Position numbers and translations under genes: made by a program. Shown piece after piece: positions 1,392-63,228 of a stretch of DNA of 64,000 nt. The notes below the pieces were generated by a model. That model made no database searches. It had not been told where the DNA came from and saw nothing but the letters and a program-made list of their open reading frames with translations. This stretch comes from Hemiscyllium ocellatum (lineage: Eukaryota): positions 62,203,776 to 62,267,775 of the forward strand of contig NC_083418.1 of NCBI RefSeq assembly GCF_020745735.1. The letters run 5' to 3'. The number at the start of each line of letters is the position of its first letter. The first letter of the stretch is position 1.

Positions 1392-4300
1392 ATGGAAATG
1401 AAGATGCCTCTACGACTGTTACCCGATGACTTCTTATATGCAGAAACCAGGCCAACCAAAAATACCCAGAAGGAAGTCATAGTTTCAATGGAAAAGCTTT
1501 ATGAGACAGAGACGGTTACACCAGTTCATGGCCTACTGCGGCATTCCCCATTACCACAGAGCAAACCAGTGGGAACTATGCCATTAGAAACACTGCCTTT
1601 GGACAAAAAAACTTTTGAAGATAAGGCCCTGGAACAAATGCTTTTAGAATGCGACCCATCAAAAAACAAGTCCTGTGACTTTAGCCAAATAAAAGCAAAA
1701 TCTTTGGAAGAGCATATATTGCGATTGCAAAATCTCTGTCGCATTTGTGGAGTTGCCTTTAACACCAACTGTTATGATATGAAATACCCAGTAAATGGTC
1801 CTGTTGATGATGTCACCCAAGAGGTGCTCAAGAAAATGGGACATGGCGAGTGTTTTTGGCCAGAACTCATCCGTAACACATTTAGGATCGATGTCAAGAC
1901 AGATACAGAAGCCAGATACCCCACTCACTTCTGCTATAACTGTTGGCGTATTGTGATTCAGACAATTAACAATACAACGAATGAAGATGCATTCTTTCCG
2001 ATCAGTACAATCATTGAGTGGAAACCACATTCCAATCTTTGCAGCATTTGCAACTTTTTGAGTGGGCCCCGCAAACGAAAAGGTCTGAAACGAAGTCCAC
2101 CAGTCACAAAGAAGCCCAAAGTCACAACTGATGCTCCAGTCAGACCAAGAGTCATTAAAAGAAAAGATCAGGTGACTAGCACAAGTTTGTTATTGGCCAG
2201 AAAGATTATCAACTGCAAGAAGTTTCATCTAACTTCAAATCTCCTTGTGCTTGATTATCCCAATAATTTTATCCAGTCCGTGTCATGTCAGGTTTGTGAG
2301 CACTTACTTGCTGACCCTGTGCAATCACCTTGCAAGCACCTGTTCTGCAGAACGTGTATCCTCAAATGCATTGCTGTCCTCGGCAAGTTTTGCCCAGTTT
2401 GTAGATTTCCTTGTGCTCCCAAAGAGCTCTTAAGCCCTGTTAAATCATTCATAAATGTTCTTAATTCACTTGTACTCAAATGTCCAGCAACAGATTGTGA
2501 AATGGAGGTGAGACTCGGTGAATATTCGAATCATGCTCAAAACCATAAAGAAATAAGAATGAAGCACGCTTACTCACCAGTGAACAAGGGAGGTCGTCCA
2601 AGACTACATTTGCTTTCTCTCACCCGAAGAGCTCAAAAGCATCGTCTGAGAAATCTGAAACTTCAGGTGAAGGCTTTCGCAGACAAAGAGGAAGATGGTG
2701 ATGTAAAGTCCGTTTGCCTGACTCTGTTACTTCTGGCACTCAGAGCTGGCAATGAGCACAGGCAAGCAGATGAGCTGGAAGCGGTAATGCAGGGGAAAGG
2801 ATCCGAACTGAAGCCAGCAGTCTGCCTTGCCATTAGAGTGAACACTTTTCTGAGTTGCAGTCAGTATCATAAAATGTACAGGACAGTCAAAGCAACAACT
2901 GGGAAGCAGATCTTCCAGCCGTTGCATGCTCTTCGAAATGCAGAAAAAATACTGTTGCCAGGTTATTATTCATTTGAGTGGCAGCCCCCTCTAGCAAATG
3001 TCTCGACAAACACTGAAGTGGGAATTATAGATGGTCTGAGTGGATGGACACAGTGTATCGATGATTATCCAATGGAAACCATTTCAAGACGGTTTAGGTA
3101 TGATGTGGCACTTGCTGCAGCTGTGAAGGAGCTCGAGGATGATATTCTAGAAGGTTTAAAACGCCATAGCGTAGACGAGTTTGTGAGTGGACCGTTTACT
3201 GTTGTAATCAAGGAGTCTTGTGATGGAATGGGCGATGTCAGCGAGAAACACGGATGCGGTCCTCCTGTTCCAGAAAAGGCAGTGAGGTTTTCCATTACAA
3301 TCATGAGCATAAGTGTGATGAATAACAACGATGAGAAAGTGGTCATTTTTGAGGAGTTGAAGCCTAATTCTGAGCTGTGCTGCCGACCACTTTCCCTGAT
3401 GTTGGCGGACGAATCTGACCACGAAACGTTGACAGCGATCCTGGGCCCAGTAATCGCTGAGCGAGAAGCTATGAAGACTAGCGATTTGATCCTTGAGATT
3501 GGGGATTTGCACAGATCCTTCCGGTTTATCTTCAGGGGCACAGGGTATGATGAGAAGCTTGTTCGGGAAATGGAAGGCCTCGAAGCCTCGGGCTCAATGT
3601 TCGTCTGTACGCTGTGCGATTCCACACGATATGAGGCTTCCCAGAACCTGGTTTTTCATTCCATAACAAGGAGCCACGAAGAGAACTTGATGCGCTATGA
3701 GATTTGGCGCTCCAACCCGTACTGCGAAACCGCGGAGGAGTTGCGTGACCGGGTGAAGGGGGTTTCAGCAAAGCCCTTCATCGAAACTCAGCCGTCCATT
3801 GATGCCTTGCACTGCGACATTGGAAATGCCACTGAGTTCTACAAGCTCTTCCAGGACGAGATCGGGGAGCTGTACAAAAATCCAAATACCTCCAAGGAGG
3901 AGAGGAAGCGCTGGCAAGCGATGCTTGACAAGCACTTAAGGAAGAAGATGAACCTGAAGCCTGTCATGAGGCTGAATGGAAATTTTGCACGGAAGCTAAT
4001 GACTAAAGAGACGGTCGACGCTGTGTGTGAACTGATTCCGTCTGAAGAAAGGCGACAAATCCTCAGGGAGCTCATGCATCTTTATCTTCAGATGAAACCA
4101 GTGTGGCGTTCCACGTTTCCAGCCAGGGAGTGTCCTGACCTTCTTTGTCAGTACAGCTACAATTCCCAGAGATTTGCAGAACTGCTTCATACAGAGTTCA
4201 AGCACAGATACGAAGGGAAAATCACCAACTACCTGCACAAAACACTGGCTCACGTCCCCGAGATCATTGAAAGAGATGGCTCTATAGGTGCTTGGGCGAG

Positions 4301-4538
4301 TGAAGGCAATGAATCAGGCAACAAACTCTTCCGGCGTTTCAGGAAAATGAATGCAAGGCAGTCCAAAAGCTATGAATTGGAAGACATTTTGAAGCATCAC
4401 TGGCTGTACACTTCAAAATATTTGCAACGGTTCATGGAAGTGCACAATACGTTAAAGGACATCAAGTGTGCAACTGTAGAACCTGAACTGATCAGTACAG
4501 AAGATACAATACCTAATGATAATTCATTTGATTTTTAA
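1392..4538 (+). CDS. RAG1: V(D)J recombination-activating protein 1, 1048 aa, single coding exon
   Basis: Contains LCRICG and HFCYNC N-terminal Zn motifs, a C3HC4 RING (CQVCEH...CKHLFCRTC...CPVC), ZFA, and the nonamer-binding GGRPR. Catalytic triad is D611 (ESCDGMGD), D720 (GTGYDEK) and E974 (SEGNESGNK), equivalent to mouse D600/D708/E962. Confidence 0.99.
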
Positions 4539-26149: not shown

Positions 26150-28120
26150 GCTCCTTCAGTGGTTCCCAGCACCACAGATACCAGTCTCCAGCCAATTCAA
26201 TTCACTCCACATGATATCAAGAAATAGCTGGATACTGCAAAGGCAATGGGCCCAGAAAGCAGTCCGGCAATAGTACTGAAGTTGTGTGCTCCAGAACTTG
26301 CCGCTCCCCTAGCTAAGCTCTTCCATTACAGTTACATCACTGGCATCTGCCCGACAATGTGGAAAATTGTCTCGGTATAATCCTGTAACTAAAAACAGGA
26401 CAAATCCAACCCGGCAAATTACCAACCAATCTCTACAATTCATCATCAGTAAAGTGACAGAAGGGGTCATCAACAGTGTTATCAAGCAGCACCTGTTCAG
26501 CAACAACTTGCACAGTAACACCCAGTTTGGGTTTCACCAGGGTCACTCAGCTCCTGACCTCAGTACAGCCTTGGTTCAAACATGGGCAAAAGAGCTGAAT
26601 TCCAGAGGTGAGGTGAGAGTGATAGCCCTTAACATCAAGGCTGCATTTGATCAAGTATGGCATCGAAGAGCTCTGGCAAAACTGGAATTAATGGGTATCA
26701 GGAGCAAGCACTTCGCTGGTTGGAGTCATACCTGGCACAAAGGAAGATGGTTGTGGTTATGGAGGGTCAGTCATCTCAGCTCCAGGACATCTAATAGAGG
26801 AGATCTAATAGAAACTTACAAGATAATTCATGGCTTAGAAAGGGTGGATGCTGGGGAGTTGTTAGGCAGGGAGACTAGGACCTGTGGGCACAGCCTTAGA
26901 ATTAGAGGGGGTCATTTTAGAATGGAAATAAGACATTTCTTCAGCCAGAGAGTATGGGCCTGTGGAATTTATTGCCACCAAGCGCAGTGGAGGCCAGGAC
27001 ATTAAATGTCTTCAAGGCAGAGATTGATAAATTCTTGATCTCACAACAAATTAAGGGCTACAGGGGAGAGTGCAGGTAAGTGGAGTTGAAATACCCATCA
27101 GCCATGATTAAATGGCGGAGTGGATCTATGGGCCGAATGGCCTTACTTCCATTCCTATGTCTTACGGTTTTATCTTTGCAGGAATCCCTCAGGGTAGTGT
27201 CCGAGGCCCAACAATCTTCAGCTGCTTCATCAACGACCTTCCATCTGTCATAAGGTCAGAAGTGATGATGTTTGCCGATGGTTGCACAGTGTTCAGCACC
27301 ATTTGCGATTCCTCAGATACTGAAGCAGTCTGTGCTCAAATGCAACAAGATCTGAACAATATCCAGGCTTGGGCCAACAAATGGCATGTAACATTCACGC
27401 CACACAAATGCCAGGCAATGACCATCACCAATAAAAGACACTGTAAACATTGCCCCTTGACATTCAATGGTATTACAATCACTGAGTCCCACACTGTCAA
27501 CATCCTTGGGGTTACCATTGACAAGAAACTCAAATGGACTCTCCACATGAACAGAGTGGCTACAAGAGCAGGTCAGAGGCTAGGAATACTGTGGTGAGTA
27601 ACTCATCTCCTGACACCCCAAAGTCTATCCACCATCTAGAAGGCACAAGTCAGAAGTGTGATGGAATACTCCCCACTTGCTTGGATGGGTACAGCTCCAA
27701 CAACACTCAAGAAACTTGACACCATCCAGGACAAAGCAACCCATGTAACTGGCACCACATCTACAAACATCCACTCCCTCCACCACTGGCACTCAGTAGC
27801 AGCAGTGTGTACTATATACAAAATGCACTGCAGAAATTCACCAAAGATGAATTTAGACAACACCTTCCAAACTCATGACCACTTCCATCTAGAAGGACAA
27901 GGGCAGCAGATACTTGGGAACACAACCACCTGCAAATTCCTCTCCAAGCCACTCACCACCATGACTTGGAAATATACTGCTGTTACTTCACAGTTGCTGG
28001 GTCAAAATCCTGGAAGTCCCTCCCTACCAGCATTGTGGGTCAACCCACAGCAAGTGGACTTCAGCAATTCAAGAAGGTAGCTCACCACCACCTTCTCAAG
28101 GGCAAATAAGGATGGGCTAA
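26150..28120 (+). mobile_element. CR1/L2-group LINE RT region (second family), interrupted at 26791-27170
   Basis: ORF 26367-27005 has QFGFHQGHSAPDL...VIALNIKAAFDQVWH. ORF 27112-27597 resumes with GIPQGSVRGPTIFSCFINDLPS...MFADGCT after the insert. Confidence 0.8.
26791..27170 (+). mobile_element. CR1-type 3' fragment nested in the preceding LINE
   Basis: Encodes RGDLIETYKIIHGLERVD...RTCGHSLRIRG and ends in the 3' UTR ATGGGCCGAATGGCCTTACTTCC...CTATGTCTTACGGTTTT. Confidence 0.75.
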
Positions 28121-31773: not shown

Positions 31774-33333
31774 TCAATCAAATAGTCTCTTCAGAAAGCT
31801 TTTCTTCATTGGTGTCCTTTTCAGAGTGGCTGGCGATTTCTTACGTGGAGATTTAATTGGTGTGCGCTTTATCTGTTTCTTCTTTTGAGGTGTTTGAATT
31901 CCTCTATCAATGTAATGCTCATTGCAAAAATACTTTGTGTTTTCTTGGGAAAACTGAATCAGCTGCGATTCTGCAAGATTCATGCACTGGGCATGAACCC
32001 AGTGTCCATCATCACCTCCGCTAGAGCAAAAAATCATTGCAGGTTTATTTAATTCTGTGGAATAATAAGGCTCCCAGATATTGACGTTCATATTACACGT
32101 AGAGCTGCATTTAATCCAATAACCTTCCTCATCAGCATTATCTCGGTTCTCTGCATCATCAGAGCCATCGGCCTCCACTTCAAAGTTAAATTCTTCTGAA
32201 TCTTCAAAGGTGCTACATTCTTCTGGATCAGTGAAGGATTCCTGGCTGCAAGAAACGTGACTTTCTTCATCTAATTGCTCAAATTTCACAATATAGAAGA
32301 AGTATGCCTCGGCTGCATCTTGTTTACTTTCTCCAGGGATGCCGAGTAACACTATATTACTTTTCATGCTACTACCAAACCAGGTTTTGCTTGCTTTAAT
32401 ATCGCCGGTCCACGCTGGGGGCTCCTTTTCCAAAATCTGAACGTTGTCATTCTCCACTGTGATGGTGTTACAAATCATTCGCTTCTTGCTCTCCGACTCA
32501 TAGCCACCAACAATGATGAATTCATCTTTTCCTGCTTGGGTCACTATTGCACTCGACACAGAGATGCCACCTTGCAGTATTGTGCACTGGACACTTGGAG
32601 AAGTCCCAAATAAATCAACCTTCAGACAAAGTAACCTTTCAGGGCGAAGGTTCGTTTCAATGGAATGGCCACCTAGTATGTACACTCTGTCAATTTTTGC
32701 AATGGAGGTATGAAATGAAAACCCATCTTCTATTTCGGGAAGTATGTGGGATGTGCAATGGCCGGTGTTTATATCAATCAGAAAAACCTCTGGTAAACAA
32801 TCAACAACACTGTTCCAGTTTTCTGTGGTTCGTTGCCCTGGGGGCCGGAAGCATCTACCCCCAAACAAGACTAACAACATTTGACCCTTGTTTTGAACCA
32901 CATTGAGGCTGTGGCCATATCTTCCTCGGGGAACCTCTCCTTCAAGATGTTTTTCAATGCAACGAAGTGATGTTGTCTTGTTGCCAGTGCTACTGTGAAC
33001 CATCATTAAATAAAGTGAATTAGTCAAGTCATTATTTGGATCTCTCCCACCGTGAATGAAATATAAAGGGCTCTTGGATTCTGAGGGATCCGAGTAATGG
33101 GTTATTGCAGGACAGCGCAGTGGGGGAAGGTAGCATGAGTCAGGTGAAAATGAAACAGCTTTCAGTTTGAGATTATGACCTTTGAGATGAAGAAGAAAAA
33201 CTCCAGTGCTGCAGGATCTTTTTGGCCACCCTTTCTGACCAAAAAAGAAGACTTCACCATTTAAATTGAATAAAGAAAAGCCTGGGTAGATAAGTCCAGT
33301 TTTGCTACACTCTGAAACCATTTGCAGAGACAT
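31774..33333 (-). CDS. RAG2: V(D)J recombination-activating protein 2, 519 aa, single coding exon
   Basis: Starts MSLQMV at ATG 33333; the track's 33339 start is a GTG. Contains the Kelch-repeat core (FFFGQKGWPKRSCSTG, IHGGR, PRGRYGHS), an acidic hinge (about 32125-32282), a PHD finger (GYWIKC..C...AMIFC...GHWVHAQC...YFCNEH) and the C-terminus KKSFLKRLFD. Confidence 0.99.
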   Translation of the reverse strand: MSLQMVSECSKTGLIYPGFSLFNLNGEVFFFGQKGWPKRSCSTGVFLLHLKGHNLKLKAVSFSPDSCYLPPLRCPAITHYSDPSESKSPLYFIHGGRDPNNDLTNSLYLMMVHSSTGNKTTSLRCIEKHLEGEVPRGRYGHSLNVVQNKGQMLLVLFGGRCFRPPGQRTTENWNSVVDCLPEVFLIDINTGHCTSHILPEIEDGFSFHTSIAKIDRVYILGGHSIETNLRPERLLCLKVDLFGTSPSVQCTILQGGISVSSAIVTQAGKDEFIIVGGYESESKKRMICNTITVENDNVQILEKEPPAWTGDIKASKTWFGSSMKSNIVLLGIPGESKQDAAEAYFFYIVKFEQLDEESHVSCSQESFTDPEECSTFEDSEEFNFEVEADGSDDAENRDNADEEGYWIKCSSTCNMNVNIWEPYYSTELNKPAMIFCSSGGDDGHWVHAQCMNLAESQLIQFSQENTKYFCNEHYIDRGIQTPQKKKQIKRTPIKSPRKKSPATLKRTPMKKSFLKRLFD

Positions 33334-33358
33334 TGCCACAGTGAAAAGCTGACAGTAT

Positions 33359-33380
33359 CTATGGAAAGAAAAGAAATATA
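33359..33380 (-). other. Splice acceptor of the RAG2 coding exon
   Basis: The minus strand reads TATATTTCTTTTCTTTCCATAG|ATACTGTC. The exon begins at 33358, 25 nt before the ATG. Confidence 0.75.
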
Positions 33381-33828
33381 AACTGATGTTAGAATTAAAA
33401 ATTTATTACAAAATTGATTGTTATGGATTCTGATGATGCAGAACTAACCACTCTGCAGCTTTTAATAAGTGCAAAAATGCTGGTTTTCGCTGTAATTTGT
33501 GTGATAAATCAGCAATTAAGAAAGACCATCACTTTATATTTCAAAATTCAATTACCTTAGGTTATGAAATACTTTTACTTTATTAAGTAAGAAAAACATT
33601 GTACTGCATTGATTTTTATTCATCATGCACAAAGTGTAATTGCTTCCAACCTTATTACTGAAATTCGGTTTCAATAAAATCTTCATTCAGCAAACTTAGT
33701 TTCTTTCCAATTCCAGGTCAGGATATGAAACCTTCAAATACTCAAATCTTTTTATTATTGTTCTATCTTTGGAACATATGTCTGGAGGGACTGAGGTGGA
33801 ACAGTGTATGATTAAGACTTACAATATA

Positions 33829-34140
33829 TTAGAGTTACAGTTTGGAAATAGGCCTTTCAGCCCAATATGTCCACACTGACCCTCCGAAGAGTAACCCACC
33901 CAGACCCATTCCCCTGCCCTACATTTATCACTGAATAATGCACCTAACACTATGGGCAATTTAGCACGGCCAATTTACCTAACCTGCACACCTTTTGGAT
34001 TGTGGGAGGAAACCAGAGCGCCCAGAGGAAACCCATGCAGACAAGGGGAGAATGTGTAAACTCCACACAGTCACCTGAGGCTGGAATCGAACCTGGATCC
34101 CGAGTGCTGTGAGGCAACAGTGCTAACCACTGAGCCACCC
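33829..34140 (-). mobile_element. HE1-type SINE
   Basis: The minus strand reads GGGTGGCTCAGTGGTTAGCACTG...GGTTCGATTCC. The body matches 43-363. Confidence 0.85.
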
Positions 34141-35671
34141 CAAATGGAAACTTGGGTTCTAAAGTAGACAAAAATGGGGTTTCATTTTTAGCCCTTTGAA
34201 GGTAGCTTTTTTTTTCGTAAGGGTTAGAAACCCATAGTTTTTTGCAGTGGATCAAATAGCTTTGCTAATAAATCATAAGACTTAAGCTGAATGATTAGAT
34301 AAGTTTCCGGGTGAGATATTTTCTGAAGCGTTTGGTGAATTCAGGTTTTAGAATCTACAGAAAGAGGGGCCAGAAGCAGTTTGTTTGCAAGAAATGCAGT
34401 CTCAGAGTAGTCAAAGTCAGACTAAAGTTAGTGTGTTAACCATATCGTGTATCTTGAGGGGAGATGAAGAGAATCATATTTGGTGAATGTGCAGAAAAAG
34501 AAATGCACGTGCCTTTGGCAGTTGAAAGAGAAATCATAGAGTGAAGTTAGAACTGATGTTGAGTATCTGTAAGGAATATTACTGGGAGAAAATGAATGAA
34601 TATTAATGATACTTCACTGGTGTTGAATATCTGTAAGGAATATTATTGGGAGAAAATAAATGAATATTTGTTATTGTTGTTTGTGATAAGGTCTCTAAAA
34701 TTGTCTTTTCTTTATCTTTGACCAACAATCAAATATTGTTATGTTAAAATTACATTGGCAATCTTGTGTGATTATGTTCAGTGAATGATTGCCACAGGAA
34801 TCAAATTGCAAAGGTAAAACTTATGGTCTATCAAGCTAAGTTTCACTTCCTGTCTGACCTGTCTAATACAACCATCAGCTAGGATCATAACAGGCACTAG
34901 AATTGAAAAGGTTACATAAATTGTGTTTGGGCCATGTTATTCGGAATCCTGAATGCATTTATGGGATATCAGTTAGAGACTAGGACCTAGAAATTGGCCT
35001 ATGGAGACAGGACAGAGGAAAATGGCTACAGGAAAGAATCACCATGGTAGATAAGGTCGGAATGCTGGAGATCCTTTGCCACATTTGCCCACATGGTATT
35101 GAATCCTGGGGAATTCCACTGCAACATGAAAACAGCCTTTCACTGCATCACTCTGCTTTTGTATCCATGCTGATATTGCCCTGTTTATACCCACTGGACT
35201 TCAATTTTGTGCATTGTTGTCCTTCATCAGACACCTTTTGGAAATTCATATACATATCGACAAATTTTTTTTTCATTCAGTCTGTCATCTCCACTTCATC
35301 AAGACCTCAATTCTGTTAGTCAATAAGGATTTCTCCTTCATGATTCTCTGCCAGCTCCCCTTTAATTGATCTTCACTTATCTAAGATGCTGTTATTTTTA
35401 CTTGTGGATTTTGTTTTTAAATGCTTCTCTGTTGCTGATATTAAACTGACTGCCAGGTTAATCCTTTCTCTCATTTTGGAAAGTGGGTTGTGATGCTTGG
35501 AGTCCTCCATCCTTTGGTGACAGCCATTTATCAAAAGAGGATCTGGTTTTCCTTAACTACTTTGTTTGTATCATTCTCAAAAATCTCATCAGGTCTTTCC
35601 CATTTAGTATTTATTCAATGCTATTTTTCAAATTGTTTTCATGACCTTGGCATGCAATGGATTCCAAATTC

Positions 35672-35932
35672 CAGGATTTTAGGAGGAAGGTACAAAGGAG
35701 ACGTCAGAGGTAGGTTCTTTACGCATAGAGTTGTTAATCCATGGAATCCTTTGACATTCTGTGGTGGTGGAAGCAGAGTCATTGGGAATATTTAAGTGAC
35801 AGCTGGACATGCACATGGATAGCAGTGAGTTGAGGGGTGCGGAGGTTAATTTATTACATTTTACATTAGGATTAAACCTTGGCACGACATCGTGGGCCAA
35901 AGAGCCTGTACTTTTCTATGTTCAATGTTCAA
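35672..35932 (+). mobile_element. CR1-type LINE 3' end (same subfamily as 12750-13011)
   Basis: GGAGGAAGGTACAAAGGAGACGTCAGAGGTAGGTTCTTTAC...ACATCGTGGGCCAAAGAGCCTGTAC. Confidence 0.75.
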
Positions 35933-36104
35933 TATTATCTCCTTACATAAACAACGATTCCTCATATTATCACCAAGTTTCGAATTATCATAAATCTACA
36001 CTTTCTGGCCCTTCTGAGACTTTTGCATCAGTAATGGCATGTATTTTGCAATGAGTATTTAGGTCTATGTGTAAGAGTTGTATGTTAGTATTAAATATGC
36101 ACAA

Positions 36105-38366
36105 TATAGAGGGAACAGAGGGGTCCAGTGACCATAACTCTATTAGTTTTAAAATAGTGATGGAAAAGGATAGGCCAGACCTAAAAGTTGAAGTTCAAAA
36201 TTGGACGAAGGCTAATTTTGACAGTATGAGGCAAGAGCTTTCAAAAGCTGGCTGGGGGTAGATATTCACAGGTAAAGGGGTGGCTGGAAAATGGGAAGCC
36301 TTCAGAAATGAGATAATGAGAGTCCAGAGACAGTGTATTCCTGTCAGGTGAAAGGAAAGGCAGGTAGGTGCTGGATGAACGAAAGAAGTTGAGGGTTTGG
36401 TTCAGAAAAAGAAGGAAGCATATGTCAGGTATAGACAGGATAGATTGAATGAATCCTGAGAAACGTATAAAGGCTGTGGGGGTATACTTAAGAGAGAAAT
36501 CAGGAGGGCACAAAGGGGACATGAGATAGTTTTGGTAAATAGAGTTAAGGAGAATCCAAAGATTTTTTTTACAAATACATTAAGGACAAAGGGTAACTAG
36601 GGAGAGAATAGGGCCCTCAAAGGTCAGCAAGGAAGCCTTTTTGTGGAGCCACAGCATTAGGAGAGATACTAAATGACTATTTTGCATCAGTATTTACTGT
36701 GGAAAAGGACATGGAAGATATAGAATGTAGGGAAATAGATGGTGACATCCTGAAAAATGTTCATATTACAGAGGAGAAAGTGCTGGATGTCTTGAAACAC
36801 ATAAAAGTGGATAAATACTCAGGACCTGAACAGGTATACCCAAAAACTCTGTGGGAAGCTAGGGAAGTGATTACTGGGCCTCTTGCTGAGATATTTGTAC
36901 CATCAATAATCACAGGTGAGGTGCCGGAAGACTGGAGGTTGGTTAACATGGTTAACACTGTTTAAGAAAAGTGGTAAGGACAAGGCAGGGAACTATAGAA
37001 CACTGAACCTGACATCAGCAGTGGGCAATTTGTTGGAGAGAATCCTGAGGGACAGGATGTAAGTGTATTTGGAAAGGCAAGGAATAATTAGGGATAGTCA
37101 ACATGGCTTTATGCATGGGAAGTCATGTCTCACAAACTTGACTGAGTTATTTGAAGAAGTAACAAAGAGGATTGATGAGGGCAGAGCAGTAGATGTGATC
37201 TATATGGATTTCAGTAAGGTGTTTGACAAGGTTTGCATGGGAGACTGGTTAGCAAGGTTAGGTCTCATGGAGTACAGGGAGAACTAGCTATTTGGATACA
37301 GAACTGGCTGAAAAGTAGAAGACAGAGGGTGGTGGTGGAGACTGGAGGCCTGTGACTGGTGGAGTGCCACAAGGATCAGTGCTGGGTCCTCTGCTTTTCA
37401 TCATTTATATAAATGATTTGTATGTGAGCATAAGAGGTATGGTTAATAAGTTTGAAGATGGCACTGAAATTGGAGGTGTAATGGACAGCAAATAAGGTTG
37501 CCTAAGATTACAACAGGATCTTGATCAGATGGGCCAATGGGCTGAGAAGTGGAAGATGGTGTTTAATTCAGATAAATGCGAGGTGCTGCACTTTTCGAAA
37601 GCAAATCTTAGCAGGACTTAAACATTTGATGGTAAGGTCCTAGGGAGTGTGCTGAACTAAGAGACCTTGGAGTGCAGGTTCATAGCTCCTTGAAAGTGGA
37701 GTCACAGGTAGATAGGATTGTGAAGAAGGCGTTTGGTATGCTTTCCTTTATTGGTCAGAATATTGTGTACAGGGGTTGGGAGGTCATATTGCGGCTATAC
37801 AGGGCATTGGTTGAGCCACTGTTGGGAATATTGCATGCAATTCTGGTCTCCTTCCTATTGGAAAGATGTTGTGAAACTTGAAAGGGTTCAGAAAAGATTT
37901 ACAAGAATGTTGCCAGGGTTGGAGGATTTGAACTATAGGGAGAGGTTAAATAGGCTGGCGCTGTTTTCCCTGGAGTGTCGGAGGCTGAGGGGTGACCTTA
38001 TAGAGGTTTATAAAATCGTGATGGCCATGGATAGGATAACTAGACAAAGTCTTTACCCAGATGAGGGGAAGTCCAGAACTAGAGGGCATAGGTTTAGGGT
38101 GAGAGGGGAAAGATATAAAAGAGACCTAAAAGGCCACATTTTCACACAGAGGGTGGTACGTGTATGGAATGAGCTGCCAAAGGAAGTGGTGGAGGGTAGT
38201 ACAATTGCAACATTTAAAAGGCATCTGGATGGGTATATGAATAATAAGTATTTGGAGGGATATGGGCCAGGTGCTGGCAGATGGGACGAGATTGGGTTAG
38301 GATAGCTGGTCGGCATGGACCAGTTAGACCGAAGGGTCTGTTTCCATGCTGTATATCTCTATGACT
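36105..38366 (+). mobile_element. CR1-type LINE, about 2.3 kb 5'-truncated copy with a disrupted RT
   Basis: ORF pieces read SQHGFMHGKSCLTNL...VDVIYMDFSKVFDKV and QFWSPSYWKDVVKLERVQKRFTRMLPGL, and the copy ends in a CTCTATGACT tail. Confidence 0.9.
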
Positions 38367-38850
38367 TTAAAGGTTTGCTCCTGCTCTTAGATCGTATATA
38401 GCAGAAGCTGGGTCTTTGTTCAAGATTGATTTGGATAGACTTTTCATAGAGAAGGGACTCAAAGGTATTAAATACAGATATAAAATAAACCTGAGACCAC
38501 AACCATGTGAGCCATGACATTGTTGAAGGATGGAACAGGCCTGAACGTTGAAATTAGCTCCCACCCCCCCCAAAACTAGTAAAACTTAAAAATGATCCAT
38601 ACTGCTCCAATTGCTTTGTATATTTTCGAACAATGCTCCAATATGACTTAGTACGTTAACTTCTATGTCTTTCTTTTTAAAACACTCTTTCTATTGGACT
38701 GCTCCTGTTTCCAACCTCATATTCCAAGCTATTTTGCTGACTGTGCGCTAAAATATTGTAATATTAGTGTGATCAACTATTTGGGAGCGCTGCATCATCT
38801 GATTGTTCAATATTCACCGAAATCTTAATCTCACACCCTCCTCTTGATTC

Positions 38851-39010
38851 CGGAATCAATATTCAGAGGCTCTATTTCCTCGGGGGTGTCATGTCCAGTG
38901 GGACCGGCCGACAGGATTTGTGGGATCTGTAGTTCACATTACGCCAACTAAGACTACATGTCCCAGCATTCCCCGTCCCTTCGACGTTGCTTGGCGACAT
39001 GGGCAAACAG
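38851..39010 (+). promoter_or_regulatory. Candidate bidirectional IFTAP/NWC promoter and non-coding exon 1
   Basis: 10 CpG in 38851-39034. Divergent ZNF143/SBS motifs lie at 38921-38933 (- strand ACTACAGATCCCA) and 38953-38971 (+ strand ACTACATGTCCCAGCATTC). An RFX X-box lies at 38986-38998 and a CAG|GTAAG donor at 39010/39011. Confidence 0.75.
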
Positions 39011-39182
39011 GTAAGAGCCTTGGAAAATGCTGCGAAACCCACTGAAATTATAACAACAAGCTGCATCTAACAACTGCCTGAATCCTCCTCATGAATAAAC
39101 AACACTCAATACAAATGGTTGTAGTCATGGTGGGGGAGATCATCCACAGTGAGGAGTGGAGGAGCCTGTCTACATTGTATCT

Positions 39183-40845
39183 GTGGGTATTGGGGGGAAG
39201 GGGAGTAGCATTGGGGGAGGGGGTGTGGGTATTGGGGGAGGGGGGAGTGGGGTTAGGTGGGTGGTGTGGGTATTGGGGGAGGGGGGAGTGGGGTTAGGTG
39301 GGTGGTGTGGGTATTGGGGGAGGGGGGAGTGGGGTTACGTGGGTGGTGTGGGTATAGGGGAGGGGGAGTGGTGTTAGGTGGGTGGTGTGGGTATTAGGGT
39401 GAGGGGGTATGGGGTTAAGTGGGTGGTGTGGGCATTGGGGGAGGGGGGAGTGGGGTTAGGTGGGTGGTGTGGGTATTGGGGGAAGGAGAGTGGGGTTACG
39501 TGGGTGGTGTGGGTTTTTGGGGTGAGGAGATGTGTTGTTGGGTGGTTGGGGTGAGTGGGTGTGGGGTTAGGTGGATGGTGTGGGCATTGGGGGAGGGGGG
39601 AGGGGGGAGTGGGGTTAGGTGGATGGTGTGGGCATTGGGGGAGGGGGGAGTGGGGTTAGGTGGATGGTGTGGGCATTGGGGGAGGGGGGAGTGGGGTTAG
39701 GTGGATGGTGTGGGCATTGGGGGAGGGGGGAGTGGGGTTAGGTGGGTATTGGGGGGAGGGGAGTGGGATTAGGTGGATGTGTGGGTATTGGGGGGAGGGG
39801 AGTGGGATTAGGTGGATGTGTGGGTATTGGTGGGAGCGGTAGTGGGGTTAGGTGGGTGGTGTGGGTATTAGGCTGAGGGGGAGTGGGGTTACTTGTTGGT
39901 ATGTGTTTTTGGGGTGAGGGGGTGTGGTGTTAGGTGCGTGGTGTGGGTATTGGGGGAGGGGGGAGTGTGGTTAGGTGGGTGGTGTGGGTATTGGGGTGAG
40001 GGGGTTATGCGGTTAGGTGGGTGGTGTTGGGTTTTGGGGTGAGTGGGTGTGTGGTTAGGTGGGTGGTATGTGTTCTGGGGTGAGGGGGTGTGGTGTTGGG
40101 TGGTGTGGGTATTGGGGTGAGGGGGTGTGGGGTTAGGTGGGTGGTGTGGGTATTGGGGTGAGGGGGTGTGGGGTTAGGTGGGTGGTGTGGGTATTGGGGT
40201 GAGGGGGTGTGGGGTTAGGTGGGTGGTGTGGGTATTGGGGAGGGGGAGTGGGGTTAGGTGAGTGGTGTGGGTATTTGGGTGATGGGGTGTGGGTTTAGGT
40301 GGGTAGTGTAGGTATTGGGGTGAGGGGTGTGGGGTTAGCTGGGTGGTTTGGGGTTTTGGGGTGAGGTGTGTGCGGTTAAGTCAGTGGTGTGGGGTTTTGG
40401 GTTGTGGGGGTGTGGGGTTAGGTGGTTGGTATGGGTATTGGGGGAGGGGGTTTGGGGTCAGGTGGATGGTGTGGGTATTGGGGCAGGGGATATGGGGTTA
40501 GGTGGGTGTTGTGTGTATTGGGGAGGGGGAGTGGGGTAAGGTGGGTGGTGTGAGGTTTTGGGGGGAGGGAGTGTGCGGTTAGGTGGGTGTTGTGGAGTTA
40601 GGTGGGTGGTGTAGGGTTTTGGGGGGAAGGGGGTGTGGGGTTAGGTGGGTGATATGGGTATTGGGGCAGGGGATGTGGGGTTCGGTGGTTGGTGTGGGTA
40701 TTGGGGCAGAGGATATGGGGTTAGGTGGGTGTTGTGGGTATTGGGGAGGGGGGAGTGGGGTAAGTTGGATGGTGTGGGGTTAGGTGGTTGGTGTGGGTAT
40801 TGGGGCAGGGGGTGTGTGGTTAGGTGGGTGGTGTGGGTATTAGGA
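39183..40845. repeat. G-rich tandem array with a ~40-41 bp unit, about 40 diverged copies
   Basis: The unit is approximately GGGGTTAGGTGGGTGGTGTGGGTATTGGGGGAGGGGGGAGT, with extreme G skew on the + strand. Confidence 0.95.
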
Positions 40846-41429
40846 TCAGGGATTGTGAGGGGCATAAGATGTGAGGGTTAGGGGAGGGCATGTGGTGGTT
40901 CAAAGGAGCTTCGGATGGGAGCGGGTGAGGGTTGGAGGTGAGGGTGTGATATCTCTACACTGGGGAAATGGGGATGGTTTGTCCACACTATCTGCATGTG
41001 TGTTTATGTATAAATGGTCTCTGTGTAGAAATGGTGGTGTGGTCTGTCTACAGTATTGGGGGGAATATCAGTCCACTAGTGAGCTTTAAATGGTCACTAT
41101 CATCTAGGAATCACAGGAGAATTATGATATATACTGAACAGAAGGAAGTTCTATAGAAATTGTGCCTGTTGTGCTTTTCTGAAAGTTCTGTTCAGTTTCA
41201 GTTCTTGGTTGTTTATGATTTTATTTCTTTCAACACTCCAACAAACTATATTGCAGATTAATTTCCTGGGAGAGCAGAAGGCTATGAAAAGAAAGGCAAT
41301 CCTAAATTGTCTTACAGTGACATTAAGGATGAATTGATAACAAGAGAAAGAGTCCGTTAACGACCACAGTAGTATTTTTGTATGTTGTCCCAGAGGGTGT
41401 TGTGAATAGATACATTGTGTCAGTGAGAG

Positions 41430-42167
41430 GGTCAACATGAAATCATGGAGAAGCTCTGTGATACAATTAAATGAATCAACACAGACAGAGAGGAGGTCCT
41501 TAGTGATCTGGCAGGCTGAAAAGAAGATAAATCTCTGGAACTAAATGAACTATTTCTGAGTTTATTGAGTGAGGCAACAGTAGAAGTAGCACTGATGTTT
41601 GCAAACGTTTTCAAATCGTCTCTGGCAACAGGAGAGGTGCTGGAGGACTGAAGAACTGACGGTGTGGTACTGTTCTTCAGGAAGGAGCAAGGGATCAACT
41701 AGGAAACTACAGGCTAATTGGACTAACATTGCTGGTGGGGAAATTATTGGAAACAATACTGAGGATGTTGCTGGAAAAGCTGGGACTTTTTTCCCTGTAG
41801 CATAGGAAGTTGAGAATCAATTTGATAGAAGTTTATAAAATAGTGAGAGGTTATAGATAGAGTTAATGGTGGTTGACTTTTCCCTAGGTTGGGGATTTCA
41901 AGACTCGGGGACACGGTTTTAAAGTTAGACGTGAAAAGACACATGGCAATTTTTTTTTACACAGGGTGGTTCGCGTGTGGAATTAATGTCCTGAGAAAGT
42001 GGTGGAGATGGGTACGATTGCAATGTTTAAAAGACGTTTGGGTAGATACTTGAATAGGAAAGATTTGGAAGGATATGGGCCAGGAGCTGGCAGATGGGAT
42101 TATGTTTGGTTAGGACTGAATTGGATTGAATGGTCTATTTCTGTGCTGTATGATTCTATGACTCTCT
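41430..42167 (+). mobile_element. CR1-type LINE fragments with an internal deletion
   Basis: GGCAACAGGAGAGGTGCTGGAGGACTG followed by the 3' end GGAATTAATGTCCTGAGAAAGTGG...GATTCTATGACTCT. Confidence 0.7.
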
Positions 42168-43698
42168 AATGTCTGATTTACTTCCCTTTTAACCATTTAA
42201 AATCATTACCTCGTCATTGTTCTGACAGACCCTCCATTTTTCTGGGTTAAATTTCACCAACATTGATTCATTCTGTTTACTAACCTGTCTTTGTCTCCTA
42301 AATTCATACAAACCATTCAAAAGCTAACCAGGCTTTCTATTGTAATGTCTGTAAATTGATATTATGTTGCTAAATAATGTCTGTATTACATATTATAGGC
42401 CAGTGCAAAGTGTTCTAAAGTCCTCGAACATTAATATGATTTTAATACCATTTACCTTAATCTTATAATCAGAAGCCTCTTGTGTAATGGCATACGAAAT
42501 TGATTTTGAGAATCCACTTGTCCTGCAATTCCTGTCACTATACACTTCATTATTTCCTCAAGCACTTGATGCAGTTTGTCAGCTATGACTAGATTTCTCT
42601 CTCTGTGATGATGTTAATTTGGTCTGGTTTCATGGCAGGTAGAAACCTACCCCATCTACATGTGAATTATGTGGGAAAGAAAGATTTATATTTATCTAAT
42701 TTGTACATTTACAACATTCTACAAAGAAGTTTTGTTATGAGCATTTTGTTTTCTCTTTGAATTCCAGTGCTCCTGTTTTTCAGTTTGTTTCATGTGGAGG
42801 CCCCAGAAAGCAAATTTTATAAAAATAAGTTTCTTATGAAGCGACTGTAAGATTTCTGCTGAATTGCAGATCATTGCAACATGGCCTGAGAGGTAATTGT
42901 TGCAAAAAGAAATGGTGTTAACCACTGTGCCACCTGGACTGCTGAGTAATCTAGTTTTCGTCCTTTTGTTCGTGTTGAAACCATTCTGTTTAAGAAACCA
43001 ACATTGTGGCACCTGTTCTTATAATTTGTGCAATAAATCTGACAATGCTGTGTTATCATTTCTAAAGCTGATTTGAGAATTGCTTTTTAATATGAAATTT
43101 AGATCGCAATTTTTCCAGTTTCACACAGTATTTCTACTGAACAATAGTCTGCAGATTAAACTATTGGAATTTGGCCTTCTATAGTAACTAATCACTCTCA
43201 AGGTGGTCACTCTTAGCCCTGAGAAGGTCCAATTCACCTCAGATTACCCTGCAGCTCCTCTGCAGTAATAACGGGGGTGTTTGCCATTAAAGCGATGCCG
43301 CTGTCAAGCCAAAAAGACGTTTGTCGATCACACAAATGAATAATGTGGTATATGCATTTCCTTGCTTGTGTGTTGCCAGGTATGTGGATTGAAAATCCCA
43401 AAGATGAGTGGGTCGAATCAAACAGCGTGTCTCTGGCTGCTCGCAATAAGATACTGATTGTCCACAGCCAGCCTGTACTTGCAAAGCCCACAGCAGTGTC
43501 TAAGATTAGATGCAATTCTAAAATTCAATACTTGCTTGGTAATCCTGCATGTGCAACAGATTATGCTGACAGTATAAAATTTATGATAGTACAGTATGGC
43601 ACACTTGTATGTACTGAAAGGTACATATAATATTACACAAGGTCCTGTTCTTTGCAGATAGAAAGAACATGTATATACACTGTATCTGTTTCAGCCAT

Positions 43699-51542: not shown

Positions 51543-54500
51543 TATCTGCTTTCAAGTTTCAACTTTTGTTTCCCTTCAAAACCATTTCAATTTTAGCTGT
51601 TTGCTGTTAATTCTTCATTATTTTGAAGCGGGGACAGTGGTTGATCTTAGTGGTTTTCTTTTTCTCAGTATGTGCAGTGGATCATGTAGTCTCTATTTCT
51701 GCTGTCAGTTTATGTTCAGTGTTTGGATGTAAATGCTCAATGTCTGCTTTTTTATTACCACTTCACAGACAGGATATAAAGCAGCAGTAATTTCCCTAGC
51801 ATGTAAATTCTTTAATGTTATTCAGATAGTTGCATTATGATGCACAGGCATCCCTTTAATTGTCAGGTAGACCTTTTGCTGTTGACTAACTTTATAGTGA
51901 GTTACAGAAGGCTTGGTTCTACATAATTCATATATTTTGGCTGTTAGCAAAATTGATTTAATGCTGTTGCTGTAATGTAATTGTACTAAACTGAGTGAAT
52001 TTAAAACTTTCTTTTGAATTACCGACCAGTACTGTTGGTTCTGAATGTTGTGATGAACAGACTGGAACATGGAGACACTGTGCAGAGAAATATCTGTTTT
52101 TCATTCTTTTCTCATGGTCCCTGATGATCAAGGCAATTCTGGCTTTGAACAATATTTCCCTTTCACATAGGTATGAGTTAAAATTTAACATTTTCACTCA
52201 ATTTATGCTCATAGTAGTTTTTGCCCTACATTTACGACTAGTTTGGTTTTTGTGTGTAGAGATAATGCTTGGTCATTCTGAGAATGGAAATCATTTAGAA
52301 TTTTGCACCGTTTTTAAAATAGAAAACTAACCGATGTCTTGGAACATAAGTCATGGAATAGCCATTTGACCGTTTTGGGCCTGGCAATACTATTCAATAA
52401 AATCGTGTTTGACCTGATTGTGGTCTCATCTCCAGCTTCCTTCCTTTCTGCCCTGCATAATCCTTGACTCTCCTCTATCAAAAAAATCTGTTATTCAACC
52501 TTGGATAAATTCAGTGGCCCAGCCGCCACTGCTCTTTGGAGAAGAGAATTTCACATACTAACAACCGTCTGAATAAGAACATTTTTCCTCCTCTCCATTC
52601 AAAAAGTATTAAATAAAAGTATACTGAATGAAGGTAAAACAACAAATAAGCCAGGTGAACGTTCAAATTGTTTCTAACTCAATTACATCTTTTTTCAAAT
52701 AGAGATCAAAACTCTACACAGTAAACCAGATGTAGTTTCGTCAGTTACTTTATATAATTTGTGCAATTTCTCTCTTTTTATATTCCATTTCTCGTTGCAA
52801 TAAACAGCAACATTCCACTTGCTTCCTGCTAAACTGCTCACTGCATCTATCTCATTTTTTAAATTGAATTCTTCATGTTTTTTTAATCAGAATGTTGTCT
52901 GTGGTCTGTCATTCCCTGATCCTCATCCTTTTTTTTATCCTTCTCGGAGATTGAGACAGTCCAACTGCCCTATGGTACCTCACCCATCTGAGCATTCTTT
53001 ATGCATGAGGCCAGCCTTGATTATGGGTTGGCTTCACATTTACCTTCACATTTCAAACTTGACAGGGTTCAAACATCTACACGCACTATTTTAATGGGAT
53101 TTGGATTCAAATTCTGAGACAGTTGCAATTGGAAATGAATTGATCACCAATTTGGAGAGTTAGCTCCAAGACTGTGACCCAGCAGGTTTGAGGGTAACTA
53201 AATTTCATGATTCTGTTTTATTAAGTGAACACTTTGGACAAAAATCTATCAGAAAATAAAACATAATCAAATGTAAATAGAGTCAAATTTGTATTATGAC
53301 AGTCTGGGTTAAAAAAAGTGGTTGCTTGTTACTGTCTGTAATTAATGTAACATTTATCTTTTCTGATGTCTTCTGTGCCAAATGTATTTCCAGTAATTTT
53401 AGCTTCATACACTGAAATAGCAGCTATGAAGGTGTAGGTTTTTAATCATTATCTTTTCTGATTCTGGATTTTCTTTAAAATTTGAAATTATTAGCCAATA
53501 GCTTTTTCTATCTCTGATCCATTTGCTTATTGGCTCACTATTCTTTGAATACCGACGTTGCACTTGATTGGATATTAATACATCATTTATATGTTAGTTG
53601 AAATTAGTGACCTTCACTGCCCTTTTAAATGTAGAGGTAAGATAAATAGAGCACAAATATGACTAACAGCTTTGGTCACTTCCATAATGACATGCCATTT
53701 CTCTCTCACTGAGTTTTCTGGACTGTGCCTAAAAACAATGTGGTAATAGTAGATCAAATTTTGTCGACAAAGTTTAATTTATATTTTTCTAGATGAAAGA
53801 AACTTTGCAGAGACTGACATGAATTATCGAGGGACATCATTCAACAACTTCTCTACAGTTCAGAATCCTTTGATAAGTTATTCAATTGCAACAACCTTAT
53901 TTGAAAGCTTCTGTATTATAAGTACAGTAAATAGTTCTATCTTTAAAAATGATTGCTATTAGTTACTATGGCAGCCCTGCATCCTTACCTCTGATCACTT
54001 TCTTTAAACAATATTACCGTCAAGTACAAAGGAGGCTGAACTTGCTTGTAGATTTAGAAGGTGGCGAAGACTTGGCAGACATGCAGCATACAAGCAGTGT
54101 AGAAGATAATTCAGGGAGTTTACAGCTGGTGCAGATGGTACTAAGCAGAACCCTGATGGGAGTAACTGTCTGATTGCTGGAGTACAACAGATGCAACAAT
54201 GACGTTCTAAAGGTACAAGATAACCAATATATCAAAATACACTACAATACATCTGCAGCACCTAAACTTCATTAATATTCTAATCCTCTTAAAACTTGAT
54301 TAAATCCTTCATGTTAAATTCCCTTTGCTAGTTATCATACTGGTTGTAATTTTAGGGAAAGCTCTTCAATTTGTATTTCTTTTCTTAGATGTAGAGATGC
54401 TGGTAGGCAACTTTTAGGTTTATTATTAAAGCAAAATGTTACCTGACTTGGGTACATTAATGATACCATGGGTCAGAACCCCGCAGTATAATGTACATTT

Positions 54501-58994: not shown

Positions 58995-61900
58995 AGTAGA
59001 TTATGAGGTGGAATTCATACTTATTGAATTTATGAACCTTTCATTCCCCTGGGCTCTGTTATTCCTTCAAATAGTTATTGGTTACATCTGTGGAGAGCTG
59101 TTTAGAGCAGCTTGGTACAAGGAATTGCTTCAAATCTTTCCTGGAGTGCAAGATTTTTGGATATATTGGGAAAAATCTAAAAATGCTGCAGCAGATGGAA
59201 AAAAATCTCCCTCAAATGTTCTCCTCTAAAGACCTCTGAGGTCTTCAAATTCTTTCCTGTTTAGAATTCGATTTTTAGCCGCAAGTTTCAACTTGGGCGG
59301 AGAATGCATCTATATCACAAAATTTTATCCTCCTTTGTAATGAAAGATACCAAGGCTATTGTGCCAGCAGTAGAATCCCATTGAGGTCAGTGGTCCCCAT
59401 TTACTCTGTTTGGAATGTCAGTGATGAGGAATCATGAGTTGAAAACTGCTGTTAATAAAGTGGGACAGAGATTAGCAAAAAATATATTATACAGAAGGTT
59501 GTTAGAACATATACGGAATGCTTTGCTACAGGATGCAGTTGTGGCACGATCAGTTATTTAAAAAAAAGGTTAATAAGTAATTGAAATAGAGAATAATACG
59601 GAACAGTGGAGAGAGAGTAAGAACAGCAAACAATTAGATTAAACTGTCTCACTGTATCTTTTAGGGGAAAAGAAATCATTTTACTGATTGCCTGTTTTCC
59701 TTTCCTGAAATGTCTTAGAATAATTCAGATAATATGAAACTTCAACTTAGAATAAAAATTGTCTCTACTTATAATGATGGGCATGTCTTAATTCTTACCT
59801 AATGCAAAATTGGGATGATTTGATGGCTGTAATCCAGTCTTTGGTGTCCAGTCCAGTTCTTTGTGAAGCATTTTCAGAGTTTCATTGTGCTGTAGTAAAT
59901 GACACTTCTGTGAGCTTGTTACAATAAATCATCACAAAAAAAGCTGATGAACATGAAGAAATGCACACTTGAATCTGATTATTTCTGTGTGCATTATATA
60001 GTGAGCTGATCAGTTCCAAAAATTAGTTAAGAACTAGAATTCTCACTATTCTGTAATCTTATGATTTTAATAAACGTCAAATGACTCTCCCTGATTCTTT
60101 CATCTACTTTATAATGAACTTTGCCAAGTGTTACATTTATCTGTGGTTGTTGCTGTATAAAGAGCTCTTCTAAGAAAGGGAATTGACAGATGCCTACACT
60201 TTGTCAGTTCAACCACAGATAGAAAAGGTCTGTGCCTTATTTAATTCATCACAATTTAACTCTTCTTCAAGATTTTGGTATTTAGATTTGTGCATTTACA
60301 GCTTATCTTTTTATGTTTAAATATTAAGATACCATTTTTATTGTGGCTCAGAAAATGATGTCCTAGGTCATTGGCTGTTTTGGGTGCAAGTTGTAGCTTG
60401 AGGTCAACTAATGAGAAATATTTAGTGCTCTTATTTCATATTCAATAAGATCATCATGCGATCAGAAGTTCTTAAAAAACAATAGCTCTTAAGAGACAAA
60501 TAGTCACTTTAAAACAACTGCTGGTAAAAGCGGAAGTGGACAAGGTTGAGTACTGCCTCATTTGGAGGTAGTGCAGGGAAATGTGGCTTATTTTTGCAGA
60601 TGAGAAGTGTCCTGCAATAAATAGCAATTTCAAAGGAACATGTGTCAATGTTATTTTACCTGAAGCCAAAACATGGGAATAGTGAGGAAGAAATCGTGAA
60701 TTCTACTTGCGTGCAGCATTTTCCTATAACTGACAGTATTACAACAGTTTAATAAGACATGTAACTTGATTGTTATCTGTGGTGTCTGAAATAGTTGGCT
60801 GTGACATATTTGGGACAACATAAGACATGCATTATATAAATCATTATATAGAAAAATAGCTCTAGCTCCTGATAAACAATAAATCAGTTCCATTTGCTCT
60901 CACATTCTTTCAGAATTATTTGCACAACACATTGGTACAGTCAGGGAGTTGATCACTTACCTGGTAACAGTTTGTTGTTCAGGATATCATTTGCCACTCT
61001 TGGAAGTCAGTTGTCACTTCAACAAAGATATAAATCATGTAATTGATGAAAAAGGTTTTGCAGGTAGTTTTTCATGGAAGTTTTGAAAAAGCTCTACAGC
61101 AGTTTGTATGTTGTCAGTAACAGAAGTCAAAACAATCGATGATAAGAATGTTTCCTGTTACAAAACCACTAGGTTTTGCATAAACCATTCAGATTGCCGA
61201 TGTAAACATTTTATGCTGGTTCATTTGAGATTCCCCAGAGAACAGATTTGCAGAAGTTGGGGTTTTTCTCTATTACAGATTTGAACTGTTATTTTTTAAA
61301 ATGCTAGACAGCATGCTTTGCGATGCAACATCCTGGTTTTGTTGTTAAAAAGCACTCGGAATTTCAGAAACCCATCAGTGTAGTATTTGATGTTCTACTT
61401 TACTTTGGGATTTTCTCAGTTAAAATACTAGAAATGTATTTTAATCAGTTCCATTTCATCATCTTTATGGATAAATCACAAACACATCAATAAATAACAA
61501 GGAATTGGGAACCTGTAATTCTCAATATAAGTTCTATTGGAATCAATTTAAGCAGTTCTGTTTAATATTTTTATCCAATCAGTTTTGTTATCTGCATTCA
61601 CATAACCTAATGCAACACTTACAAAAGCAAACTTCAAGTGAAAGAAAATGCCCAAGAAATTTGATAACATCACAACAATAATTCAGACCCAAAGTAGGTA
61701 ACTCAGCATCTAATATAGTGGGCAGGGAGTGCCAATCATCAGATACATTGGCTGAGACAGCCCTGGCTATGATACCTACTGGAACGTAGGTATCGATTTA
61801 AAATATTCACACTTCAGCTGTGTATTTGTTTTAGAGCCAATCTGTTAGATGGCTTTAAAAAATCTGTCATGGTTGAATAATTGGCATGCAGTGGGTAAAA

Positions 61901-62364: not shown

Positions 62365-63098
62365 ATTCAATTGGCAAAGATTTAACTGAGACTTTCAGTG
62401 CCAAGCAGGGAACAGGATCTCCTTTGTTTTGTCCACTTTACCAGGATCTCTAAGTGGCCTGTCTGGACCACTTAGAGCCAGATTAACTGTTTGAAAATGA
62501 TTCTTTCTAAAGCCAAAATACACCTCTCCTTTAATGTCAAAAATATCCAATTTCCTGACAAAAACTTATGATGCCCATGTATGCAATTTTTGTAGTCCAT
62601 CTTTCGTTATTCCATCACTGGGTGTGCTTTCGAACTCTCTGCAGACAGAATTCATGATGAACCATAAATTTTTATTTTCTTTTCTTTTGATTTAAAGTTT
62701 ATTTGTTATATTTCAGTTTTTTAAAAATAAATTTCATTTATATGTTACAATCTTTATTTCCCTGACTGTAAGATGATTAACAAATGAAGGGGAATCTGTG
62801 TGTTTAACTTCCTGGTGTACTGTCAGTGAAAATTCTTTAGTGGGATTTGCTGCTTAGCCTGTTAGTTGACAGAATTGTTGCTAGACAATGGAGAACTCCT
62901 TTGTTTATGGCAGATTAAAATTAATGTTGAAAGACGTGAAATACTTGTCACAGAGATCTGTAGATCTTTGTGGACTACTTTCTTAGAAATTAGTGATAAA
63001 TAAGCCCTGGCACCTCACCACTGACCACAAATCCATTTGTTTTATTGTAGCTAACTCTGTGCCTATTTTGTATTCTAGATGAAATACCTACATTAGAC

Positions 63099-63228
63099 AT
63101 GCCAGCAGTGTTGGGATCACAAATTATGGGGGAAGGAAGAACAGCCTTTGATGCTCTGGAAAAATTTTGCAGCAGTCATGAACAAACATATGCTGAATTC
63201 TTAGAATCATTTATGCACCTCAAAAAAG
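63099..63228 (+). CDS. IFTAP: First coding exon of intraflagellar transport-associated protein (C11orf74/NWC); the remaining exons lie beyond the window
   Basis: Acceptor TTTTGTATTCTAG| at 63078 and donor AAG|GTAAG at 63228/63229 (phase 1). Encodes MPAVLGSQIMGEGRTAFDALEKFCSSHEQTYAEFLESFMHLKK, matching the recalled human N-terminus [34 protein letters not shown]. Position and orientation next to RAG2 are the expected synteny. Confidence 0.85.

Follow-up and report, generated by a model that had tools for sequence, protein, structure and literature searches.

The epaulette shark RAG locus carries two divergent ZNF143-type motifs between RAG2 and its neighbour IFTAP, and this raises the question of which gene the motifs serve and whether transcription toward RAG2 could yield RAG2 mRNA, as an earlier note on this DNA had suggested. 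We addressed the question in a 64,000-nt stretch of Hemiscyllium ocellatum DNA, taken at its full length as the window, and in the RAG2 neighbourhoods of other vertebrates.

The window has the gene order RAG1-RAG2-IFTAP, and IFTAP (NWC, C11orf74) is head to head with RAG2, an arrangement shared with other jawed vertebrates (Table 1). RAG2 was 97% identical to RAG2 of Chiloscyllium plagiosum, and its coding exon has a strong acceptor at 33359/33358, read directly from the sequence. The first coding exon of IFTAP corresponds to residues 1-43 of the annotated Hemiscyllium ocellatum protein with 100% identity, and the annotated protein begins at the 63099 ATG. The motif pair sits between this exon, on the plus strand, and the RAG2 coding exon, on the minus strand. 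Between RAG1 and RAG2, at 26367-27597, are two open frames with reverse-transcriptase (RVT_1) matches, which are retroelement remnants.

Table 1. Features of the window, with window positions and strands
Feature	Positions	Strand	Remarks
RAG1	1392-4538	+	Single open frame
RAG2 coding exon	31774-33358	-	Pfam RAG2 (E 3e-145), plus RAG2_PHD; ATG at 33333
Interspersed repeat	37031-38262		Many dispersed copies in the window and the skate locus (local blastn)
Small CpG cluster around the motif pair	38801-39050		10 CpG per 200 bp; observed/expected 0.77-0.85
Putative RAG2-side ZNF143/ZFP143 site (SBS with ACTACA extension)	38910-38935	-	Exact core; 15/17 against the consensus
Putative IFTAP-side ZNF143/ZFP143 site	38951-38976	+	Exact core; 14/17 against the consensus
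Predicted non-coding IFTAP exon 1	38977-39010	+	Ends at the 39011 donor; start somewhere after the IFTAP-side site
X-box-like (RFX-type) element, GTTGCTTGGCGAC	38986-38998	+	33 nt from the start of the IFTAP-side core
IFTAP/NWC first coding exon	63079-63228	+	Pfam IFTAP PF17722 (E 2.9e-10); ATG at 63099

The motif pair and its conservation

A search of both strands of the 64 kb with ACTACANNTCCCA returned two matches, namely ACTACAGATCCCA on the minus strand at 38921-38933 (the RAG2-side core) and ACTACATGTCCCA on the plus strand at 38953-38965 (the IFTAP-side core), the latter followed by GCATTC. The cores are divergent, with 19 nt between them; the positions, strands, and GCATTC continuation reported in the earlier note were thus exact, as was its placing of the motifs ~5.6 kb upstream of the RAG2 coding exon (5.56 kb by coordinates). 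The number of ACTACANNTCCCA matches expected in the window by chance was 0.04 (mean of dinucleotide shuffles), and two matches occurred in 0/100 shuffles. For scoring, we used the 26-nt ZFP143 consensus RRACTACANNTCCCRNNNNNCNNGCG, which had been applied to the mouse NWC promoter (PMC3439442). The two sites scored as listed in Table 1, and a score of at least 14/17 was reached nowhere else in the window. All that the two sites miss of the consensus is its 3' GCG, which we count as a point against their being a promoter.

The pair lies in a local CpG cluster that is the richest non-coding one in the window, though small. Positions 38801-39000 form the highest non-coding 200-bp bin for CpG, with 10 CpG, an observed/expected ratio of 0.85 (0.26 for the whole window), and a GC content of 0.49. 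As the cluster extends over only ~200-250 bp at a GC content of 0.49-0.51, it is borderline by the usual island criteria.

RAG2 neighbourhoods were retrieved by way of their RAG2 proteins, and seven species were compared: the window species, Heptranchias perlo (sevengill shark), Amblyraja radiata (skate), Callorhinchus milii (chimaera), gar, bowfin (Amia), and platypus. A 6-kb flank from Xenopus laevis had no site at ≤1 mismatch; this locus did not translate to the query and was left out of the comparison. Upstream of the RAG2 coding exon, four lineages besides the window had a divergent pair whose ACTACA ends face each other, and such a pair occurred in 0/300 plain shuffles per locus. The gap between the cores and the distance to the RAG2 ATG were 19 nt and 5.6 kb in the window, 21 nt and 4.4 kb in Heptranchias, 18 nt and 1.2 kb in Amblyraja (with one mismatch, ACTCCA), 62 nt and 0.3 kb in Callorhinchus, and 41 nt and 3.4 kb in platypus. 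In the comparison with other chondrichthyan genomes that the earlier note had proposed, the pair was found in sevengill shark, skate, and chimaera.

The IFTAP-side site was present in 7/7 species, including gar and bowfin, while the RAG2-side site was kept in 4/4 chondrichthyan lineages and in platypus. The gar and bowfin loci (L003 8150-8300 and L007 5480-5600) keep the IFTAP-side site, the X-box-like element, and the donor, but on the RAG2 side the site is missing or degenerate. Not all jawed vertebrates, therefore, have the inverted pair, and the loss of its RAG2-side member suggests that RAG2-ward output is probably not under general selection and is dispensable in some lineages.

Through these comparisons the published layout, with two inverted ZFP143 sites separating RAG2 from NWC/IFTAP, is extended to four lineages of chondrichthyans, and support is gained for an origin of the arrangement in the common ancestor of jawed vertebrates, at the time of RAG gene domestication. 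This statement is qualified by the variation in spacing between the sites (18-62 nt) and in how far the promoter lies from the RAG2 exon (0.3-5.6 kb), and by the presence of only the IFTAP-side site in gar and bowfin. Conservation of bidirectional activity in jawed vertebrates is reportedly the subject of a 2018 study by the group that described the mouse promoter (Sniezewski et al., Dev Comp Immunol 81:105), to judge by its title. Four points go beyond the literature accessible to us: the narrow spacing of 18-21 nt in elasmobranchs, a distance to RAG2 that varies, the RAG2-side loss in gar and bowfin, and the conserved RFX-type box.

The IFTAP side of the probable promoter

The sequence GTTGCYWGG, a putative RFX-type X-box by its consensus, lies at an offset of 31-37 nt from the IFTAP-side core in the window, Amblyraja, Callorhinchus, gar, and Amia, and of 59 nt in Heptranchias. 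In the fetched loci the element is on the minus strands, at ~9581-9593 in L001, ~8742-8755 in L002, ~8187-8200 in L003, ~5473-5486 in L004, and ~5486-5499 in L007. A GTTGCYWGG element followed by a GTRAG donor was common to 6/6 fish lineages compared. GTTGCYWGG was not evident in the platypus locus, which keeps the donor only; the GTRAG donor itself follows the IFTAP-side site by 58-107 nt in 7/7 species. Conservation within the element is confined to the left half-site plus GG, the right half being poor. The conservation of the element supports a putative RFX site in the IFTAP promoter.

The GTAAG donor that had been noted at 39011 is present as the near-consensus CAG/GTAAGA, with 39011 the first intron base, and among all GT sites of the window it ranked at the 99.8th percentile with an approximate donor matrix based on standard tables; the other donor scores given below come from the same matrix. 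We infer that this donor ends IFTAP exon 1 and that 39010 is joined to 63079. Among the IFTAP relatives retrieved, none derived from a transcript contig that would reveal the 5' UTR. With this junction, an ATG at 38999 opens a 9-codon upstream frame whose stop lies 2 nt before the IFTAP ATG. Because the frame stops after nine codons, exon 1 would be non-coding, as reported for mouse. The proximal ZFP143 site of mouse is at -45/-20, and the first mouse NWC exon is non-coding (PMC3439442); by analogy, the shark start site would be near 38990. A start ~20 nt after the site, as in mouse, would make exon 1 only ~15-35 nt long, which is unusually short and a weak point of the proposal. A promoter followed by a short first exon would be expected to show this conserved order of elements, with the site pair first, then the X-box-like element, then the donor.

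In the mouse NWC promoter, ZFP143 binds two inverted sites on which activity in either direction depends (Laszkiewicz et al. 2012, PMC3439442). The NWC start site is 313 nt from RAG-2 exon 3, and RAG-2-ward transcription starts at -143 and gives an intron-less RAG-2 transcript detectable mainly in testis (PMC3439442). ZFP143 sites were also reported in human, dog, Xenopus tropicalis, and Latimeria, with a spacing of 40-50 bp in tetrapods and coelacanth (PMC3439442). The shark module resembles the mouse and human NWC promoter in lying at the IFTAP 5' end and head to head with the RAG2 coding exon, in its two ZFP143-consensus sites arranged as a divergent inverted repeat (platypus has the same orientation), in its CpG cluster, which is borderline as an island, and in the predicted non-coding nature of the first IFTAP exon. 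It differs in that the sites are 19 nt apart here, and 18-21 nt apart in three elasmobranchs, rather than 40-50 bp as in the species of PMC3439442; in that the RAG2 coding exon is 5.6 kb away rather than ~0.3 kb as in mouse; and in that the CpG cluster spans only ~200-250 bp.

Position, conserved layout, and the published mouse sites together point to the motif pair being the IFTAP core promoter, i.e., the shark orthologue of the known NWC/IFTAP promoter, and we consider this reading, taken jointly with mostly non-productive leftward RNAs, likely. The earlier note's view of the pair as a promoter-type ZNF143 module fits this location at the 5' end of IFTAP/NWC, opposite the RAG2 coding exon, with position and layout conserved in four lineages.

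Factor binding, start sites, and the fate of leftward transcripts are what we infer from the sequence, as follows. ZNF143 would bind both divergent sites. THAP11 and HCFC1 are its probable partners on the ACTACA extension. Another 20 nt along, the X-box-like element is the probable target of an RFX-type factor. Plus-strand transcription would start somewhere in 38966-38998, and the short non-coding exon 1, ending at 39010, would be spliced to 63079 directly or via unseen exons. The promoter is probably intrinsically divergent, like other ZNF143 CpG promoters.

Like bidirectional CpG promoters of the ZNF143 (Staf)/THAP11/HCFC1 type, the shark promoter has full ACTACA-NN-TCCCA motifs near the predicted start, is TATA-less and CpG-rich, and has divergent sites. 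It is unlike them in that a lineage-restricted recombinase exon, at a distance of 5.6 kb, takes the place of a housekeeping partner as the opposite unit; no partner first exon was evident on the RAG2 side of the shark promoter. With ciliary promoters of the RFX (X-box) type it shares a GTTGCYWGG within ~35 nt of a ZNF143 site, before or at the predicted start, from chimaera to bowfin, but its right half-site is poor, the element is not evident in platypus, and RFX binding is putative. IFTAP is described as an intraflagellar-transport-associated, testis-enriched gene (PMC6283527). The conserved RFX-type box offers a testable link between the ciliary and testis role of IFTAP and its promoter.

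Transcription toward RAG2 and other readings

The mouse precedent makes it natural to ask whether the shark promoter is productive in both directions. Leftward transcription would then start at ~38860-38880, use a donor at ~38817-38836, and be spliced to 33358, giving a translatable RAG2 mRNA in non-lymphoid tissue, e.g., testis. The orthologous mouse promoter does drive RAG-2 transcripts in testis and other tissues, and its RAG-2-side ZFP143 site is needed in both directions (PMC3439442); in the shark, the RAG2-side site is exact and is kept in all four chondrichthyan lineages, a strong acceptor is available at 33358, and GT sites are available at 38836, 38834, and 38817. The mouse transcript, however, is unspliced and starts ~170 nt from the coding exon (PMC3439442), whereas the gap here is 5.6 kb and is filled in part by an interspersed repeat (Table 1). 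An unspliced RAG2 leader would be 5.5 kb long and contain 99 ATGs and 10 poly(A) hexamers, so the unspliced route taken in mouse is not open here.

The spliced route has its own difficulties. The minus-strand donors at 38817 and 38834, which the earlier note had called weak, do exist, but together with that at 38836 they rank only at the 89th-94th percentile, as chance gives in a few hundred bases. An alignment of the RAG2-side flank of four chondrichthyans had nothing conserved beyond the site itself and no conserved donor. The RAG2 acceptor, for its part, is in any case needed by lymphoid transcripts that come from an upstream RAG2 exon, and the fact that gar and bowfin have lost the RAG2-side site likewise argues against a general need for RAG2-ward output. 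RAG2 mRNA from this promoter looks harder to obtain, and less likely, than in mouse; a productive bidirectional promoter in the shark is accordingly a reading we regard as unlikely, and, judged by sequence features, the RAG2-ward transcripts would most likely not be RAG2 mRNA but short upstream antisense RNAs of a non-productive kind.

A related proposal places a spliced RAG2 transcript in germ cells: driven by the elasmobranch ZNF143 pair, it would, together with RAG1, supply germ-line RAG activity. The proposal would fit the testis enrichment of IFTAP/NWC in mouse, and germ-line RAG activity has been deduced from recently germline-joined immunoglobulin genes in the nurse shark, another orectolobiform (Lee et al. 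2000, PMC2193156). We hold this proposal to be very unlikely; were it true, germ-cell RAG2 transcripts from the shark promoter would be relevant to how germline-joined antigen-receptor genes arose.

The sites could also act mainly as a control element of the RAG locus, through Ikaros silencing at TGGGA cores in lymphocytes or as a ZNF143-bound chromatin anchor. For mouse, competition by Ikaros for these same sequences and inactivation of the promoter in lymphocytes have been proposed in two reports (PMC3439442; PMC4157847), and the shark cores contain TGGGA. Such control is compatible with a promoter role and secondary to it, and the conserved X-box, donor, and IFTAP coding exon all point to a transcription start, making control as the main function highly improbable. 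ZNF143/Staf sites also serve snRNA and tRNA-Sec genes, and the motifs are short, so that a distal element of an snRNA-type gene or a chance occurrence has to be weighed as well. Against the two together stand the chance expectation of 0.04, the 0/300 shuffles per locus, and the retention of the pair over ~400 million years or more, and we give them hardly any credence. Chance origin is ruled out by this conservation. A Staf element of an snRNA-type or tRNA-Sec gene is ruled out by the Rfam scan of 34100-42000, in which no family reached its gathering score on either strand.

Conserved blocks and repeats nearby

Several other parts of the window were conserved. IFTAP intron 1 contains a deeply conserved non-coding block at 42697-43188 (core ~42870-42990), separated from the RAG2 exon by the promoter. 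The block aligned at 71% over 527 bp to Heptranchias and at 84.5% over 71 bp to Callorhinchus and contains two CAGGTG E-boxes; no conserved donor was found in it. We regard the block as a candidate RAG2 upstream promoter or enhancer; a motif pair inside a RAG2 intron, as expected of an NWC/IFTAP promoter, would require one or more RAG2 5' exons beyond it. Three further blocks (54033-54224, 60082-60192, and 61122-61389) were conserved relative to chimaera or skate and occur in collinear order, the strongest match among them being 78.6% over 276 bp (E 1e-54); an enhancer role, for the RAG locus or for IFTAP, is possible. A stretch of ~400 bp of AT-rich sequence (33342-33726) immediately upstream of the acceptor of RAG2 is conserved in elasmobranchs (75% over 416 bp to Heptranchias, partial to Amblyraja) and is not conserved in chimaera. 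Finally, a G-rich minisatellite at 39182-40888, with a 41-bp unit in ~35 copies and a GC skew of ~+0.95, begins 170 bp past the predicted exon 1 donor and gives the coding strand of intron 1 G-quadruplex potential.
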